The notes beneath the pieces were generated by a model that saw nothing but the letters and a program-made list of their open reading frames with translations, did no database searches and had not been told where the DNA came from. The position numbers and the translations under genes were made by a program. Shown here piece by piece: positions 1,216 through 10,569 of a DNA stretch of 64,000 nucleotides. Source of the stretch: Zootoca vivipara (taxonomy: Eukaryota); NCBI RefSeq assembly GCF_963506605.1, contig NC_083279.1, forward strand, positions 102,176,001 to 102,240,000, written 5' to 3'. The first letter of the stretch is position 1; the number at the start of each line of letters is the position of its first letter.

Positions 1216-4200
1216 TCATTTCAGGTCCACGTCAAAATCCAAAACAAGCAGCTTGGTCTCCTCGGTCCCGTTGCGGCTCCCCACAGCGCACACCAGCTTT
1301 GTGTTGGAGGCCCGGATGCGCCAAACCACCCCCCCGCTGCCGCCACTTTCCAGCGCCACCAGGTTGCGCACAAACTCGCCCGTCTTGAGGTCCCACAGCT
1401 TGACGGTGCCGTCGTCTGAGCTGGTCACCACAAACTTGGAGCTGAACTGGAGGCAGGTGACGGCACTCTGGTGCTTGCTGGGACCTGCAGAAGTTGCGGG
1501 GGGGGAGCAAGGAAGGTGAGAGGCAGTCACCAGCTGCCATGCCCAGCCAGCAAGTGCCCAGGCACCTCTTCTTGGAGGACGCCACTGGTGGCAGGCTCCC
1601 ACCCTATGCCTGCTTCCGTATCCCAAATGGGCTCTCCCCACCCCAAGGCCTTTGGGAGGGCTGATGGGGAGTTTCAGAGCTGAGCCAGCTGCCCACCGCA
1701 CCCACCTTGCAAGGTCTGCAGACACTGGCCCGTTTTGATGTCCCAGATCTTGACCGTAGAGTCGGCATTGCCAGAGACCAGGATGTTGTCGCGCAGCTCC
1801 ATGCCGCTGGTCAGGGACTGGTGGCCCATCAAGGTGTGCAGGCAGTTACCGCTCTCAGCATCCCACACCCGGATCGAGGTGTCCAGGGAGCCGCTCACAA
1901 TGTGGGTCCCATCAAACTGTGCAAGAGAGGGGTGGGAGAAGTGAGTGGCTGTGCGAATCAGGGGGTGGGGGGGTGGGGAGGGGAGGGAAGGGGTCGGGGT
2001 CCCTCACCTGCAGGGAGTAGACACGATTGGTGTGGCCTTGCAAGGTGTGGATGCAGCTCTCCGTCTCGGGGTCCCAGACCTTGACCGTGTAGTCGTAGGC
2101 GCCACTCACCACCTTGTGCCCGTCGTACTGGACACAGCGGACGGCGGCCACGTGGCCCATCAGCACATGCAGGCACTGCCCGGTCTCGATGTCCCAGAGG
2201 CGGAGGGTGGCGTCCCGTGAGCCACTCACCACCCTGCCGAGGGAGGAGAGACAAGCAGCTTGAGTCCCAGGCAGGAGCGGCAGGAGGGGTCCCTGGAGCG
2301 GCCTCCCCTCCCCCAACCTACCTGCTGCCATGGAGGTGCATGCAGCGCACGGTGGAGGTGTGCCCGTAGAGGGTGTGCACGCACTCGCCCGTGTCCGCGT
2401 TCCACACCTTCAGGGTGCGGTCTGTTGAACCACTGATCACGATGTTGTCCCTCATCTGGGAGGACCAGACGCCCCCCGTGTGCCCCACCAGGGTCTGAAC
2501 ACACTGCAGGAGGATGAGGAGGAGGAGGAAGGTGCTCAGAGCCAGGGAAGGCGGAGCCACAGCCGGCCCCGCCCACAGCACCATTTCCCAGACTCACCTC
2601 CCCGGTGACAGCCGACCACACCTTGAGCGTGTTGTCATCTGAGCCGCTCACAATGCGGTTGCCGCAAAACTGGAGGCAGGTGATGACATGGTCATCGTGG
2701 CCTTTCAGAACCTGGCACAGGGAGAGATTTAGCGGGCCAACTGGCATCACCCTGCACCCCCACAAAGAAAGTGCCCCCCCTTTCTCAAGTGGCCTTGAGT
2801 TCTCCAAGACAGGGCTCCAAGGCTTGAGACAAGGCCCAGCGGTCAGGAGCTGGCATCAAGCAGGCCGACTTCAAATTCAGCAAGGGCTGGACGTTCAGCC
2901 ACAGTGACAGCCCCAACTCTCTTCCCACCCCCCACCCCCCACATTTGTGAATAGCCAGAATAATTCAACTTTCTGGATCTTCTTTGCCAGAAGTCAAAGA
3001 TCCACCTAGCCCAGCAGGACCCACACTAACTGGCAGCAGCAGCAGCGGCTCTCAAGAGTTTGGGGCACAGGTCTGTCCCAGCCCACCACTGAGCCCTGGG
3101 CCCTGCCTGGTATAGGACAAGGACTGACAAGGACTGGGACCCAGCTGGGCACCCAGGCATTGAGTTGCTCTGGGTGAAGCGCTTGGAAGGAGACACCATC
3201 TTTTCCTCCAGAGCCTGCTGTTTGGCCCCCATTTTGCAGCCACCCCATAGATCCCATGGCGAGGTATGTCAACCCCAATGGTGGGGGTCAAGGGAGGTCC
3301 CCTACCTTGGGGGGACGGGCATCCCCGCCACGCCAGTTCATGTCAATTCGGTGCTGCCGCAGGAAGGCCAGTTTCCAGGGGCTGTACATGAAGCCTGGGC
3401 TGAGCAGCCGGCGCTTGCGCAGACTCAGGGGCTCCTCAATACCTGCAAGAGACAGAAGTGGCTGTGACAAGGAGGAGGCCCAAGGGCAGCCGGGAAGCAA
3501 CACTGGGCAGGAGCTGAGCTGGGCCTCACCTGCATCGCGGCACTTCTCCCGCCACAACAGGTTGTCCTCGGCCAAAATCCGCCAGTAGCGGCAGGTCTGC
3601 GCCGCCCGGAGCAGGTCCCGCGGCTCCAGGAATGAGAGCACGTAGAGCGCCAACTGCAAAAGGGGCAAGATTTCCTCCTGTGAAAGGCCTTCCTGGGTGC
3701 AAAGGGCAAGCCAGGCCCAAACCGGTGCAGCTGCAGAGAGAGCATGGGGCTGGGCTGGGCTGGGCAGCTCTTCTCTGGCTGTGGCCTGGAGGGCCTCCCT
3801 CTCGGGTGAGGCAACTTCCAACGTTCACCACAGCAATGGCCCCCGGCTTTGTGGCAATGTGGAGACTTTGCCATCTAGATGACCTGACACCACCAGGCCC
3901 CACACAGCTGGGAAAGGGGGTGAGGGGCTGCTGCCATCCTTTCACCCTCACCAGACGAACACCTGAAGCAGCCCTCCAATGCTCCTCCAAGAAGAGAGCT
4001 GGGCAAAGGCCCTTGGGAAGGCCAGTGGTCCACACCCTCCTCCCACAGCCCCTCAAGGCCCAGCCAAACGCAGCAGCTCTCAGGGCCCACCAGGACCCCC
4101 CCAATCCCAAACCCCGCAAAGGCCTCTCCTGCCTTTCCAATCCAGCACAGAGTCTGCGGCTGAGCTCCCTGTTCTGACCACCTGGGCCAATCTCTTGCCC

Positions 4201-7200
4201 TCCAAGCATCCTCCTGCCATTTCTCCTTGTCCTCCTTGCCACTCCCCTACCTGGTTGGGCTCTTTCTTTGGATGTGTTACAGAGGACTCCCTATGGCACA
4301 GCTTTTGCTCTAAAATGGTAGCCTGCACCTCACAAGGGAAGTTCTGCTTTGGCCTGGAGAGGCAGGGAGAGAGTGTCCGTTACATTAGCTCACCTACGCA
4401 GACGTTCAAGCGAGCTAAATCCATTCATTGACTGCTGTCTCTCCTCTCCTTTGACATCTTTGACAGCCTTCCCTTAATGTTCGTATATTTAAAAATTAAG
4501 GGGGGGAGCGGCTTTCGACTGAAAGTGTTCAGCCCATCTGCCATTTATGACAAGCACACCATTTAAAACCATTTAACAATCACTTTCAAAAAGACAAGAT
4601 TTTGTACTCTGCATCTGTTTACATTTTAAAGCCTAATTTGAGCATAAAGCCCAACTTTTGCCTTAGCAACCAGAAATCATTTGGATCCCAGAGGCCCAAT
4701 TTCCACCCCCCCCCACTTCCTCTTCTTTCCCATCACTTTCTGCTGCACACTGAGACAAGGCCTGGGACCCCCAGCCGCTTGCTCTTGGCCAAGCTCTCTC
4801 CTACCATCCCCTTCTGGGTTGGTCTGTTCTTCCTCCCTCCTGCAACGCCCTCGGCTGTTGTTCCTTCCCTTGGCTGCCTCATTCCTTTTCCTCCTCTTTG
4901 GCAGGAACTAAACTCTGGCTCTTAGCTTCTTGCCAGGCCTTCAGGTTCTCCGATAACTTGCCTTTAAAACTTTTCCAAGGCCTTGAGATCAAATCAAATA
5001 GCTCCTTCTCTGATGTATCTTTTATCTCTTGCTAAAGCAACTGGCTCTAGTCAATTTTCCTCCTGGTGCCACATTCGCACTTCAGATAAAGTTCTCTTCT
5101 TCCAGTTTCTCTCTGATGGAAGTTACTTCATCCTAGTGTTTCTGTGAGTTTTCATGGACACTTTAAAAATGTGTAGCTTGTATGACTAGTTCTGACTCTT
5201 ATTTGTTTTAGACACAAGTAGGTAGCCGTGTTGGTCTGACGCAGTTAAATAAAAAATAAAAACAAAAAAATTGTCCAGTAGTGCCTTATAGACCAACTAA
5301 GTTTGTTCTGGTATAAGCTTTCGTGCGCATGCGCACTGCTTCACTTCTTTTACAACTACCTATCGTGTCCCCTTATCCCCCCCTCTTGACTTTGGCCCAG
5401 ATTCTGATCTCTTGGCCTGTTGCTCAAGGCTTTCCAACACCGCCCTGCAAGCTCATTCTTCCACCATCACCTTTGGCCAACAACTGCCCTGCATTCTTCC
5501 TCCAAGACACTCCCCCCACCACCACCCACCAGACACTCACCTCTTTGGGCAGCAGTGATATGAAATCGCGCTGGAATTGGGGCTCGATCACTTGCATCAT
5601 GTGCTTGATCTGAGGAGGCTCACAGCGGTCAATGAGCTCATCCAGAGCCAGCAGCTTCTCTGGGCCACTCCAGCGCTGGCGGGAGAAAGGAGTAAGGGGA
5701 GATCAAGCGCAAAACCCAGGATTGCTACCCATCTCTGGGCCAGAACCAAGGCCGCAAAGCAGCCCACAAAAGCAATCCAAGCAAAAGCACCACCATTGCA
5801 TCAGCTCACTTTTAAGATCAACCCCCTAAAAAAAACAACAACTTGGAAATGAGAAACACACAACATCTGTGTGTTTGGCACAACATCTGCCAAACGCCCG
5901 GCTCGTGAAGGCTTTTGCCGAATGTCAGAAGGTCAGCACAAGCCAGCCAGGTGGCCATTCTGCAGCTGCCATCCAGAATGCGCAGCCCTGCTCTGCCTCC
6001 AGCCAAGGGCCTCGTGCATCACACACAGACACACACACATGAGGCTCTGTCTGCCGCTCACCTGGAAAGTCCGCAGCCAGTCCTGCAGCTCAGGGGGTGG
6101 TGTCATTGGGGGGACATGCCGGCAGCGTGCCTGGCCTGCCTTGGCATTCCGCAAATCCCCAAAGGTGGCTGTGGGGCTAGCGACACAGGGGCCCAGCACT
6201 CTGGAAAGGAAGCAAGTATGTCAGGAAAATGCCACGGTGGGGGTCCGAGTTGTTCTCCCACAAGCATTGGCCCAAGTCAAGAGTCCGGCTGGAGACAGAC
6301 TCCATGTCCCACCCGGCACCTTGCAGGAGCTCCCGAGCGCCACCCACAACCTCCTCACCTGCCCCTCTCGGAGCCCTTGCACAGCTTCTTGCCAGGCGAC
6401 TGGGCTCTGCCATCTGGGCCGCTCTCTGACTTGCGCTTCATCTGCAATGCAGAGAGATGGGGCAGAATGGAGTCACATGGATCCAGGCAATGCACACAGC
6501 TGAAAGTCAAGTGGGGCACTCTTCTTGCTGCCTCCACCACACAGTAGCCATGCCAGGGCCCCCCTGCCTCCCCAAAAGACGGGAAGGTTCAATAGCAGAA
6601 CACTTTCTCTCAGAACACAGATCTACAAACTGCGCTTTGGGACGACAACCTTGTAAGGGCAGGAGGTGGGGAATAAAGATGCAGCGCACAGCAGCCCTCT
6701 CCCCGCCTGACAGCTTTTGTCTTTCTTCCTTGGAGCCTTGATGGCCAGAACACACCTGAGAATCACAAGAGCCTGCTGGATCAGGCCAATGGCCCATCGG
6801 GCAAAGGTAAAGGACCCCTGGAAAGTTTAAGTCCAATCAAAGGTACGATGGGGTGCTGTGCTCATCTCGCTTCCCCCTGAGGGAGCCGGTGTTTGTCCGC
6901 AGATAGTTTTTCCAGGTCATGTGGCCAGCAGGACTACACCGCTTCTGGCGCAACGGAACACAGTGACGGAAATCAGAGCGCATGGAAATGCCATTTGCCT
7001 TCCTGTCCCAGCAGTACTAATTTATCTGCTTGCACTGGCATGCTTTCAAACTGCAAGGTTGGCAGAAGCTGGGACCAAGCAACCGCTCGCCCCGTTGCAC
7101 AGATTCAAAAAGGGATGTGCATGGGAGTGTGGTCTAAACCACACTGACCCTCTTGGGCTTGCTGATTGGAAGGCCCATCCAGTCCAGCCCTCTGTCCCCA

Positions 7201-8904
7201 TAGTGGCCAACCAGATGCCCATTATGGAAACCCACAAGCACAATTGGTGCCCAAGAACAACACCCCCACCCCCGGTCACCTGTGGCTTCCAGCACCTGGT
7301 TTTCAGAGGCATCGCTGCCTCTTACTGTGCAGGGCAGAGCAGAGCATGCTTAGCCATGGTGGCTAGTTGCCGCCAACAACTTCTCTTCCATGAATTGCAG
7401 ACTGAAATGCAGACTTAGAATCTGCACAGGAAAAATGTGCTCCAACTTCAAAAATTCCTCCAGTGAGCAAAATAAAAATCACAAACGAGGCATTAAATTC
7501 AAGAGCTCCCACCCACTTGTTTTGGTCAGCACAGTCCCTTGGCTGCACCCCCTGAGAAATGCTCAGCACAAGCATTGATGCCACAGCCATTTCCAGGGAG
7601 AACCTGAAGGCCCTGGCCAGCATCACCCTCCCCTCCTGCCAGCCTCCCTGGGCCAAACCGAATACTTGCACAGCCCCCCCACCCCCCACCCCCCTGCTGC
7701 CTGGCATGGACACTCTCGGCTGCCTGCTGCACCCCAGAGCCCCATCCCTGTCTCTGGGCTCCTTTCCCCAGGCACCTTCAGGAGAGGAGAAGTGTCTGCT
7801 GGATCTGGCCCCTCGCGGGCAGCCTCCTGCTCTCCCGGGGGTCTCGCAGGTGCCTGGGGCTCCCCCTTCCCTTTCTCTTCCCCCGCAGCCCCTTCTTCAC
7901 CTTGGGCCGCGTGTGCCGGATGAGGCCGCCGCCCTCCGTCCGCTCCAGGTAGTCGATCCAGCGCTCGTCCACCGTGTAGTAGAAGTAGACGTCGCCGCCG
8001 CTCTCCTCGCCATCGCTGCTGCCGCCGCTCGTCTCGTCCTCGGAATCGGGAGCCCCGGGCGGGTAGGAGCTGCCCGGCTCCTCCTCCAGCTCCGCCTCGT
8101 CCGCCAAGCAGGCCGGCGCCCAACTCTCCTGCTGCTGCTGCTGCTGCCCGGGACGCGGCGGCGGCGGCGGCGATTGACCCGCCTCTTCGCCCGGAGCCTG
8201 CGAGGGGAAGCGGGCAGCAGGGTTCAGGCAGCCTCGGCCCGGCCCGCCGCCCCGCCGCGCCCCCTCGGCCGGCACGGCTTCCTCCCGCCCGCCCCCCGCC
8301 CGCCCCGCAGCCTCGGAGAAGGTCGCCGCCAAGCCCACCTCGGTGGCGGCAGCGGCGCCGTCGCGGGGCGCGGGAGCCGAAGACGACGGGGAGGCGGCAG
8401 CTCTGGCGGGGTCCGGCTGCTGCGCGGAGCAGATCATTCGCTGGCTGTTGAGCTCCAGGATCCGCGCCGTGATCCCCTTGACGTGCAGCAGGTCGTCCAG
8501 GGAGGCGAAGCCCTTCAGTTCCTGGGGGGGAGGGAAGGGGGCGCCCAAGTCACGCACCGAGAGAGAAGAGGAACCCTCCCCCCCCGGAAAAGCCCCTCCC
8601 GGCAGGAACGGAGCCCCTCCCCTCCTCTGGGGGCCCTATTTTTGGGGGGGAGGCGCGGCGCGGCAGGTAAGCAGCCCCTCGGGGGGTTCGAGACCCGCTC
8701 AGTTCCGGGGGGGGGGGAGGAAGGTGGTGCTGGTGGGCCCCTTCGGACCCCTGGGTCCCTCACCTCCCTCTTGCGCACGATGCCCCTCGCCCGGCGGCGC
8801 CCGATGCCGACCAGCGCCCGCTCCAGCTCCGCCACGCAGGCCCGGTTGATGTCCAGCTTGCCCCCGCCGCCGCCGGGCCCCGGCCCGCCCGCCGATACCG
8901 ACAT
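1216..8904 (-). CDS. FBXW7-like: FBXW7 paralogue with N-terminal ComEA/EEPD1-like tandem HhH domain; 12 exons, 793 aa
   Basis: Exons 8904-8764, 8521-7901, 6441-6359, 6200-6062, 5675-5541, 3653-3530, 3442-3306, 2711-2598, 2503-2322, 2233-2008, 1916-1706 and 1484-1216. All junctions are GT-AG, total 2382 nt = 794 codons with no internal stop seen. Contains the FBXW7 common-exon start ([15 protein letters not shown]), dimerisation domain ([29 protein letters not shown]), F-box ([33 protein letters not shown]), WD40 repeats with the phosphodegron-binding arginines ([24 protein letters not shown]) and the C-terminus [14 protein letters not shown]. The FBXW7 core (exons 3-12) is certain; splicing of exons 1-2 onto it is inferred from phase-0 junctions. 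Confidence 0.88.
5220..5350. mobile_element. Probable Penelope-like element terminal fragment
   Basis: GGTAGCCGTGTTGGTCTG...GCCTTATAGACCAAC...ATAAGCTTTCGTG resembles the terminal repeat of reptile Penelope-like elements. Recalled from memory, not searched. Confidence 0.45.
6803..7106 (-). mobile_element. Degenerate Sauria-type SINE
   Basis: Reverse complement matches the copy at 26242-26596 (AAAGGTAAAGG tail, GCTCATCTC, GTCATGTGGCCAGCA, GCTTTCAAACTGC..GGTTGGCAG.AGCTGGGAC). Confidence 0.7.
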
Positions 8905-9420
8905 TGCTGCCGCCGCCGCCGCCCGGACTCGGCCGGACTGCGCTTGCGCCGGCCGCGCGCCGCCCCTGCCTCCCCTACAGCCCCCAGCAGGCATTGAGCG
9001 ACGAGACACTTCCGCTTCGAGAAAAGCACTTTATTCAGAGCGACGCGACGGCGGCCCAGACGAAGCCCCGCCCCCTGACGTCACCGCCGCTTGTAGAGGC
9101 AGGGGCGGAGCGCCAGTCCCGGAAGAGCCCTTTCGCCCCGCCCCTTCCGCTTCGGCGCTTCTGCCTTGCGCAGCTCGAAGGTGAAGAAGTGGCTGCCCGT
9201 CACGTCCTGGAAGGAGAGGAGGGGGAAGGCGATGCGGAGGCGCGCGCGGGCCGGAGGGGGCCTCGCGCGCGCCCGGCAAGGAGGACGGGAACCCCCCGCC
9301 CACGCCCCGCGGAAACCTACCTTGCTGAGGAGCCGGAAGCCGAGCCGGGCGAGCGCCGCCACGAAGGCCCGCACGTCCGGGAAGCGGCTGGCCACCTCGG
9401 CCACCAGGAGGGTCCCCCTG
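7850..9420. promoter_or_regulatory. CpG island and probable promoter of the HhH-FBXW7-like gene, overlapping the RRP8 terminal exons
   Basis: Very GC- and CpG-rich. NRF1-like TGCGCTTGCGC near 8939-8949, ETS-like CACTTCCG 9007-9014 and CCGGAAG 9119-9125, GC boxes at 9066-9075, 9102-9110 and 9136-9144, perfect CRE TGACGTCA at 9076-9083. Confidence 0.7.
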
Positions 9421-10516
9421 GGAGGGAGGGAGGGAGATCAGCCAAGGCGCCCCTTTGCCCCCCCCCCGCTGCAGCCCCTCTTCACCCTCCCAGCTCTGCG
9501 TCAGCAGAAATGACAGCTGAAAAGAGGTATAAAGGACTAAGTGTGATGCTGAGTGAATCCTCCAGCAGCCAGAAACATCCCCATCCCTTGTGTGTGTCAG
9601 GAGGGCACCTGCAGAAGCCAGGAGGGGCTGGGAGAAGGCTTGGCCTGGCCCCCCAAAGAGAGGGGCCCCAAATACGATATGCCATTGTTCTTGCTGGCAC
9701 TTTGAATGGTTAGCAATCATGTAATCCTTTCCCCCTAAGCAGTCCAGGGAATGCATGCTTATTTTATTACTGCATTTCATGTGGTCACCCGTCAGGAAAC
9801 CTCAGAGGATTCCTCAGAAGCAGCCCCTTCCCACCTTTGGAAATTTAAAATGTCTGTTTTACAATATTTTATGGCCTGTAACCCAGCCAGATGGGCGGGA
9901 TAGAAGTAATAAAATTATTATTGTTACTATTATTATTCACAGTGATCCAGAGCTGCTGCCTCTGATCCTGTGGCCAACATGTAGCCACTGACAGCCTTCT
10001 TTCTCTCTCCAGGGCTTCAGACCCAAGGGTCCTTCTCTAAGCTCTTATTGGAGCTGCCACGGGTGGGTGTGAGTGGGTGAGCCCAAGACCTTCTGCCTGG
10101 GAAGTCTGCACTCCCACCAAAGCTCTTCCTGGCCAGAGAGTCACATCCTCCTCCTCGCTACTTGTTTTCAAAGGCAATTGGTGCTGAGGACTGATTTTAA
10201 AGGATGCAAGCCAACTAGATCAGAGAGAGTGTTTTGGTACTGAAATAGAAAATACATGAATAGTGGTATTTTCAATATCCAAGTTAGTTATGCTGAAATT
10301 TTGCTTACAAGCAGATTTAGCTGATTCACGGGCTAAAGGCTCTTTGCAACCATCATTCATTGTCTGAAAATTAGTAAATTTATATTAACATAATCCTCTA
10401 CTTTAGTAATACGGTACCTTTTGTTTAAGTTGTTTGTTGTTACTTCAGTTTTCTGTACAACACTTAGAAATGTTCTAACTATATCTCTATTAGTAGAAAC
10501 CCAGTCAGATGGGCAG

Positions 10517-10569
<53 letters not shown>

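Follow-up and report, generated by a model that had tools for sequence, protein, structure and literature searches.

A Conserved FBXW7 Paralogue with a Predicted N-Terminal Helix-Hairpin-Helix Domain Next to RRP8 in Zootoca vivipara

Introduction

FBXW7 is a heavily studied tumour-suppressor ubiquitin-ligase receptor and is generally treated as a single-copy vertebrate gene. Its F-box binds SKP1, its D region dimerises, its propeller reads Cdc4-type phosphodegrons, and its alpha, beta and gamma first exons, which set the compartment, all join at the exon that begins with MKRK. Some other F-box proteins are known to carry domains directed to DNA, namely KDM2A/FBXL11 and KDM2B/FBXL10 with a CXXC domain and FBH1/FBXO18 with a UvrD helicase. 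Paired helix-hairpin-helix domains, (HhH)2, contact the phosphate backbone of double-stranded DNA through two hairpins, and in KIF22 an HhH module tethers another activity to chromosomes. Here, we describe a gene, called FBXW7-like below, in a stretch of 64,000 nucleotides from Zootoca vivipara (RefSeq assembly GCF_963506605.1, contig NC_083279.1, positions 102,176,001 to 102,240,000 of the forward strand; this whole stretch is the window, and all positions are counted within it). On its minus strand, exons for a predicted ComEA/EEPD1-type (HhH)2 domain are spliced to a complete FBXW7-type body.

The first-pass annotation of the window had presented this fusion as a candidate new system. This description has to be withdrawn, since the exact model is RefSeq XP_034970875.2 and the architecture of HHH_3, F-box and WD40 is already annotated in about 100 species (RefSeq and UniProt). 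The novelty of a DNA-directed F-box receptor is also lower because KDM2A, KDM2B and FBH1 are already known. UvrD and YccV domains are likewise listed among the F-box proteins of Xenopus (PMC4556705). In open-access papers and bioRxiv we found no literature on an FBXW7 paralogue with an HhH domain. The gene is real and expressed, is already in RefSeq, and appears never to have been studied; it is a known type with undescribed variation and not a new system.

Gene Structure and Transcription

The minus strand at 8904-1216 contains 13 coding exons with a total of 2238 nt, or 746 codons. All 13 are preceded by AG and followed by GT and have zero internal stops. The boundaries beyond the MKRK exon were placed by eye and then checked exon by exon with a script. 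The translations of all 13 exons, together with that of a 141-nt segment discussed below, are exact substrings of XP_034970875.2 (793 residues), which RefSeq names 'F-box/WD repeat-containing protein 7 [Zootoca vivipara]'; the gene model of the first-pass annotation, with this segment included, was thus already in RefSeq. Version 1 of XP_034970875 is found in a 539-residue cluster entry without the HhH exons.

Coding exon 1 (8904-8764, 47 codons) carries the start codon (ATG, 8904-8902) and the first half of the (HhH)2 domain, and it ends at a GT donor. The second half of the domain and the start of a linker are encoded by exon 2a (8521-8339, 61 codons, flanked by AG and GT), and exon 2b (8197-7901, 99 codons) encodes a Pro/Gln/acidic linker and a conserved aromatic block. 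After the donor of exon 2b (AAG followed by gt, 7901/7900), the next acceptor is at 6441 and precedes the first FBXW7-type common exon (MKRK, ATGAAGCGCAAG; 6441-6359). Then come a common exon upstream of and entering the dimerisation (D) region (6200-6062), the D-domain exon (5675-5541), the F-box exon (3653-3530) and a linker-helix exon from the F-box to the propeller (3442-3306), for which splice sites, the RefSeq substring and tblastn agree. Five WD40-propeller exons (2711-2598, 2503-2322, 2233-2008, 1916-1706 and 1484-1219), supported by the boundary check and the RefSeq substrings, complete the gene, and the stop codon (1218-1216) directly follows the last of them.

Transcription was investigated on 6000-9450 with three stranded raw RNA-seq runs and a contig run whose kind is uncertain, all from the same species. 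The junction of exon 1 to exon 2a (8763/8520) is covered by a contig with 113 nt on its short side and by one read in each of two runs. The junction of exon 2b to the MKRK exon (7901/6441) is covered by a contig and by two reads per run in all three raw runs. Further downstream, the junction 6359/6200 was found in a contig and in reads of two runs, and in one run 23 reads connect 6062 with the beginning of the following exon. All of the listed junctions are GT..AG on the minus strand, and the first mates lie on the plus strand over the exons, which fits minus-strand RNA in usual stranded libraries. The first-pass annotation had proposed that the HhH exons are spliced onto the FBXW7-type MKRK exon and had named both joins for an RNA-seq check; this check was run, and both junctions are present. 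The HhH exons and the intact FBXW7-type gene share one transcript.

One correction of the earlier gene model is necessary. It was right about exon 1 at 8904-8764, the acceptor before 8521, the donor at 7901, the acceptor at 6441 and the phases, and the ends of its 207-codon exon 2 were correct, but exon 2 is not a single exon. The RNA removes an in-frame GT..AG intron of 141 nt (8338-8198) that is coding in XP_034970875.2. Its junction (8341/8199) was seen in 6, 1 and 10 reads of the three raw runs and in one contig, and the raw-run depth is zero across 8204-8319 inside the intron. The N-terminal module is therefore 47 + 61 + 99 = 207 residues long, not 254. The spliced form is also annotated in Podarcis muralis, where isoform X2 (XP_077782918.1, 736 residues) is without the 141-nt segment.

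Some differences between the RNA and the assembly were observed in this region. Junction reads from the contig run and from two of the three raw runs have six additional letters, CGGTGG on the plus strand, at 8341. This position lies in a GCC-rich coding repeat of exon 2a, and the insertion looks like a two-codon (Ala-Thr) indel polymorphism or a collapsed assembly repeat. Fixed single-base differences from all covering reads or contigs exist at 8036, 9117, 9124, 9359 and other positions, and the one at 8036 (G>A) falls at a third codon position of exon 2b. These differences fit a different individual rather than RNA editing.

The intron between exon 2b and the MKRK exon contains an interspersed repeat (6696-7275) whose RNA depth is very high and, summed over contigs, reaches about 1250. 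At 6767/6798 and 7041/7083, hundreds of reads leave the repeat for unrelated sequence. The consensus of these loose ends, ...GGGATTCGAAC, resembles the reverse complement of a tRNA T-arm, and this suggests that the repeat is a tRNA-derived short interspersed element. The small joints inside it are probably other genomic copies.

The FBXW7 Body

Pfam matches of F-box-like (55.2 bits, cut-off 24.3) and F-box (32.3 bits) were found on 3653-3531 of the minus strand, and XP_034970875.2 has seven Pfam WD40 stretches. The propeller of the gecko orthologue was predicted by AlphaFold2 with predicted local distance difference test (pLDDT) scores above 90. The exons 2503-2322 and 2233-2008 align without gaps to positions 150-211 and 211-286 of chain B of the FBXW7 structure 2OVP. 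The equivalents of R465, R479 and R505, which are the degron arginines, are kept in the motifs STVRCM, GSRDAT and AAVRCV. They are R54 in the translation of exon 2503-2322 and R7 and R33 in that of exon 2233-2008, and they correspond to positions 203, 217 and 243 of 2OVP chain B. The offset of 262 between the two numberings presumably comes from a 263-707 construct, which fits the 445-residue chain.

All 33 FBXW7 and FBXW7-like proteins that we aligned have the MKRK motif unchanged, and the D region is nearly invariant across them. In tblastn, the D-domain exon (5675-5541) matched Podarcis FBXW7-like with 92% identity and canonical Podarcis FBXW7 with 84%. By Pfam, the gap-free 2OVP alignment and tblastn, the D domain, the F-box, the WD40 repeats and the three arginines are intact, as had been claimed.

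Paralogy, Age and Distribution

The propeller exons with unambiguous high-scoring segment pairs in tblastn (2233-2008, 1916-1706 and 1484-1219) matched Podarcis FBXW7-like with 98-100% identity and Podarcis canonical FBXW7 with 89-91%. We then calculated a tree of 36 proteins with IQ-TREE, trimmed to their common part; the tree is unrooted, has no invertebrate outgroup, and the joined window protein is not among its members. FBXW7-like and canonical proteins were split into two clades with support of 100/100. The FBXW7-like clade holds rays, sharks, lungfish, newt, caecilian, turtles, birds and squamates, and its branching is that of the species tree from sharks to amniotes. The canonical clade holds gar, teleosts, sturgeon, lungfish, frog, caecilian, reptiles, birds and mammals. 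Both clades have members from lungfish, caecilians, turtles, squamates and birds.

Judged from these alignments, the gene is an old FBXW7 paralogue and not the FBXW7 orthologue, and the tree split agrees with the old duplicate that the first-pass annotation had suggested. With a root between these clades, the duplication would have occurred before the split of cartilaginous and bony vertebrates. We also considered canonical FBXW7 as the identity of the gene; it is ruled out by the 100/100 split together with the better exon matches to Podarcis FBXW7-like.

Cluster listings extend the distribution to many more turtles, squamates and birds, Alligator mississippiensis, three caecilians, three salamanders and about 20 sharks and rays. 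A phmmer search with exon 2 against 1.84 billion representatives returned 16 matches, all of them fragments or chimeras. This count understates the distribution, since the fused proteins probably sit at 50% identity under canonical FBXW7 representatives.

No mammalian, anuran or teleost FBXW7-like protein was found in searches of protein databases, which did not extend to genomes. As far as protein databases go, this agrees with the earlier suggestion that the gene is apparently absent from this locus in human. In zebrafish, a second fbxw7 gene has been sought and none was found (PMC3404928), which fits the missing teleost copy. The 'Fbxw7-like' genes of Xenopus were considered as the same gene and rejected: they are frog-specific and of moderate similarity, no HhH domain is listed for them (PMC4556705), and no anuran matched in our searches.

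The N-Terminal HhH Domain

For the Pfam, Protein Data Bank (PDB) and structure analyses, database orthologues stood in for the joined window protein, and the exons of the window were searched singly. Exon 1 alone matched the Pfam family HHH_3 with 23 bits (E 8.4e-5) over profile positions 5-35 of 65. No Pfam match was obtained for the 207-codon 'exon 2' alone; half a domain plus a low-complexity linker is under detection. In the turtle orthologue KAH1185786.1, where exons 1 and 2 are joined, HHH_3 scored 47.5 bits (E 1.9e-12, cut-off 27), and the match covers residues 13-69 and profile positions 5-60 of 65. PF12836 is also precomputed for squamate, bird, turtle, amphibian, lungfish and ray proteins, among them the Podarcis FBXW7-like protein, whose 90% cluster includes XP_034970875.2. 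In a sequence search of all PDB chains, EEPD1 and ComEA were the sole matches. EEPD1 (9yi2) reached E 3.3e-7 with both of its HhH domains aligned, and the ComEA structures 8dfk, 8dss and 2duy followed with 6.5e-5, 2e-3 and 0.6.

AlphaFold2 predicted five helices, with pLDDT values of 81-87 in the turtle N-terminus and 85-91 in the full-length gecko orthologue. The two hairpins are L.GIGRRRA and VKGIT, and the second has T for the second G of the usual G-h-G. Together, the profile matches and the predicted helix pattern assign the N-terminal domain to the ComEA/EEPD1-type (HhH)2 family, which is the type that the first-pass annotation had recognised.

An N-terminal alignment of 17 species shows that the domain is nearly invariant from rays to lizards (D.NRA..EL..AL.GIGR.RAR.IVR.REELKGF.SLDDLL..KGIT..LE.N.). 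Exon 1 is almost unchanged from sharks to birds, and over the same range the hairpin glycines and the neighbouring basic residues are invariant. The acidic linker that separates the HhH domain from the aromatic block differs freely between species, both in length and in sequence. The aromatic block itself shows conservation from sharks to birds, with almost no change among bony vertebrates, and MKRK directly follows it; the phase-0 join RPK/MKRK is kept in all 17 species, from rays to birds.

In the AlphaFold2 models, the aromatic block is disordered or forms a short low-confidence helix that is undocked. In the full-length model of the gecko orthologue, neither the HhH domain nor the aromatic block is confidently docked on the propeller or the D region, so that this model neither supports nor opposes an autoinhibition or pseudo-substrate idea. 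Our guess is that the block is a partner-binding linear motif.

Proposed Function

We consider it likely that FBXW7-like is a SKP1-CUL1 receptor that combines an N-terminal (HhH)2 domain, an aromatic motif and a complete FBXW7 body, and whose location would be set by its N-terminus. The SKP1-CUL1-F-box (SCF) receptor function is the part in which we have high confidence. Conservation predicts dimerisation, SKP1-CUL1 binding and ubiquitylation, and the protein would serve as a substrate receptor for Cdc4-type phosphodegrons. The N-terminus would fix the site of action, as the N-termini of the FBXW7 isoforms do.

The (HhH)2 domain would probably make a weak, sequence-independent contact with double-stranded DNA. 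In a dimeric receptor, two flexibly linked copies could strengthen this contact, and the ligase would be concentrated on chromatin as the outcome. We propose this avidity because EEPD1 needs several copies joined by dimerisation for DNA binding; the loss of one (HhH)2 domain or of dimerisation lowers its DNA binding (PMC12988330). For DNA or chromatin tethering by the HhH domain, we judge the balance to be slightly in favour. A more complete scenario can be offered tentatively, and we would rather doubt it than adopt it: a chromatin-tethered dimer may ubiquitylate phosphodegron proteins in place, for instance factors of transcription, replication or repair, the aromatic motif may recruit or gate a partner, and the lineages that yielded no copy (mammals, frogs, teleosts) may have lost this division of labour or passed it to FBXW7 isoforms.

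The same SCF receptor could carry an HhH domain that does not act on DNA. The domain would then be a protein-interaction or localisation module, directed for instance to the nucleolus or to a partner, or an RNA-binding module, and a basic stretch of the protein would be mainly a nuclear-localisation signal. (HhH)2 domains have heterodimerisation roles in XPF-ERCC1 and MUS81-EME1, the second hairpin of FBXW7-like is GIT instead of the usual G-h-G, and the undocked aromatic block resembles a partner-binding linear motif. It also agrees with this explanation that the isolated HhH region of EEPD1 is without DNA binding (PMC12988330). However, ComEA and EEPD1, the closest solved sequence relatives, are DNA binders, and the best structural neighbours, weak as they are, are the DNA-binding HhH modules of ComEA, the KIF22 C-terminal domain and polymerases lambda, mu and beta. 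The hairpin glycines and nearby basic residues are moreover invariant from sharks to birds. We therefore regard a non-DNA role as unlikely, although it is the most serious of the alternatives.

Several observations weigh against a chromatin-directed receptor made from all of these exons. The putative DNA binding of the HhH domain is drawn from its family membership, and the isolated (HhH)2 region of EEPD1 did not bind DNA stably (PMC12988330). The structure searches, made with a small domain in a mostly disordered model, were not significant. The best match in Foldseek was ComEA (8dss_B, E 0.46, 42% identity over 55 columns); next came the HhH domain of KIF22 (E 2.0) and then polymerases lambda, mu and beta, all of them weak; VIA-align against 48,161 chains gave Z values of 3.5 or less and no clear winner. 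The family assignment thus depends on the profiles and the predicted helix pattern and not on a structural match. Of the two domain checks suggested in the first-pass annotation, the HHH_3 profile succeeded in the turtle orthologue, and the structure prediction gave the five helices without significance in the searches. On the transcript side, the junction counts are low (1-10 reads per run), and 8900-9015, around the ATG and the transcription start, is nearly without coverage, so that the RNA runs do not define the transcription start. Shorter isoforms that start at MKRK are annotated in sharks and some lizards, and NCBI models in many birds, turtles and lizards join RRP8 exons to HhH exon 2, which would break the HhH domain. 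As for the absence from mammals, frogs and teleosts, the negative searches given above apply to protein databases.

Neighbouring Genes and Annotation

The gene lies between RRP8 and a dynein-heavy-chain gene, as had been described before, and Pfam matches were found on both flanks. A C-terminal exon of a dynein heavy chain (Dynein_C, E 1.9e-15) is located at 7-600 on the plus strand. This frame is presumably the 3' end of DNHD1, convergent with FBXW7-like, and the two 3' ends are about 600 nt apart. On the other side, the last coding exon of RRP8 (9404-9084, minus strand) was identified by Pfam Methyltransf_8. The RRP8 stop, at about 9083, is about 180 nt from the FBXW7-like ATG on the same strand, and the RRP8 AATAAA (9035-9030) is about 125 nt upstream of this ATG. 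Farther out, at about 10400-10600, an RRP8 intron or flank holds a long AT-rich trinucleotide microsatellite, several frames of which read as poly-Ile or poly-Leu.

The public annotation of the gene falls into three incompatible forms. Besides the FBXW7-like form, there are stand-alone 'uncharacterized' HhH proteins that read into the intron, in Mauremys and Terrapene, and products named RRP8 isoforms, in many birds, turtles and Podarcis. Models in Colius and Pogona are among the examples too. The tight tandem arrangement, with the RRP8 signal so close to the FBXW7-like ATG, probably explains the RRP8 names. There is a systematic annotation fault at the RRP8/FBXW7-like tandem pair, in which the gene is merged with RRP8 or split off as 'uncharacterized'.

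These names raise the question whether the main product is a conjoined RRP8-FBXW7-like protein, in which the penultimate RRP8 exon is spliced to HhH exon 2a and exon 1 is minor. NCBI predicts RRP8 isoforms of this kind for Colius, Falco, Aquila, Strix, Natator, Podarcis and others; in addition, the poly(A) signal of RRP8 is near the ATG, and 8900-9015 is nearly without RNA. However, the lizard RNA runs on 6000-9450 show normal splicing of the last RRP8 intron (junction 9205/9320) and the join of exon 1 to exon 2a, and none of their reported junctions leads from RRP8 to 8520. Exon 1 is near-invariant from sharks to birds, unlike a rarely used exon. A conjoined main product is consequently very improbable, while some transcripts from RRP8 to HhH exon 2 may exist as well. 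That the HhH exons form a separate small gene, as stand-alone models from two turtles (Mauremys mutica LOC123363112 and Terrapene LOC115271300; 206-296 residues, extending into the intron behind exon 2b) would have it, with the join an artefact or rare read-through, is contradicted by the junction 7901/6441 in a contig and all three raw runs, by the RNA depth of zero just downstream of the exon 2b donor (7740-7855), which means that the HhH exons do not end there as a separate transcript, and by the conserved phase-0 join and the fused form annotated in about 100 species, and we give it hardly any credence.

Comparison with Known Systems

FBXW7-like is a second, strongly conserved FBXW7 gene with its own N-terminus of DNA-binding type, present in most non-mammalian jawed vertebrates (among them chicken-type birds, turtles, lizards, salamanders and sharks). 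In those animals, it may buffer FBXW7 knock-out and substrate studies. The pair of FBXW7 and FBXW7-like is also a natural experiment, in which an N-terminal module would redirect the same degron-reading propeller. Its value is limited by the facts that none was found in mammals and that the gene is already in RefSeq, and by a function that is predicted from sequence.

ComEA (8DFK, 8DSS, 2DUY) belongs to the same Pfam family as the N-terminal domain and gives the best single-domain score, 25 bits, with 42% identity over 55 columns in Foldseek. In contrast to FBXW7-like, it serves in DNA uptake as a receptor that is periplasmic or anchored in the membrane, it has an oligomerisation domain and it is not linked to ubiquitylation; the structural match to it is not significant. 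KIF22 (Kid, PDB 2EDU) is the second-ranked structural neighbour, with a weak E of 2.0 and in an unrelated protein context.

EEPD1 (9YI2) is the best PDB match and is, like FBXW7-like, a vertebrate protein in which flexibly tethered (HhH)2 is combined with dimerisation. The difference is that EEPD1 has two (HhH)2 domains per chain (17 and 14 bits per domain) and an EEP fold, whereas FBXW7-like has one, placed on an F-box/WD40 receptor. KDM2A, KDM2B and FBH1 are similar in another respect, in that an SCF receptor is taken to DNA by a domain of its own, as would be the case here. FBXW7-like would use an HhH fold for this, and it has a phosphodegron propeller in place of leucine-rich repeats or a helicase.

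Also among the closest known systems is FBXW7 itself (PDB 2OVP, 2OVQ, 2OVR). Unlike FBXW7, FBXW7-like is a separate gene beside RRP8, forms its own clade with 100/100 support and evolves faster than the near-frozen canonical gene. It has the predicted (HhH)2 domain and the aromatic motif at its N-terminus, which to our knowledge are absent from every FBXW7 isoform. The two genes nevertheless share the same body, made up of the basic MKRK stretch, the D region, the F-box and eight WD40 blades, with about 82% identity over their common part; the degron arginines are the same, and in both the specific 5' exons join at the same point.

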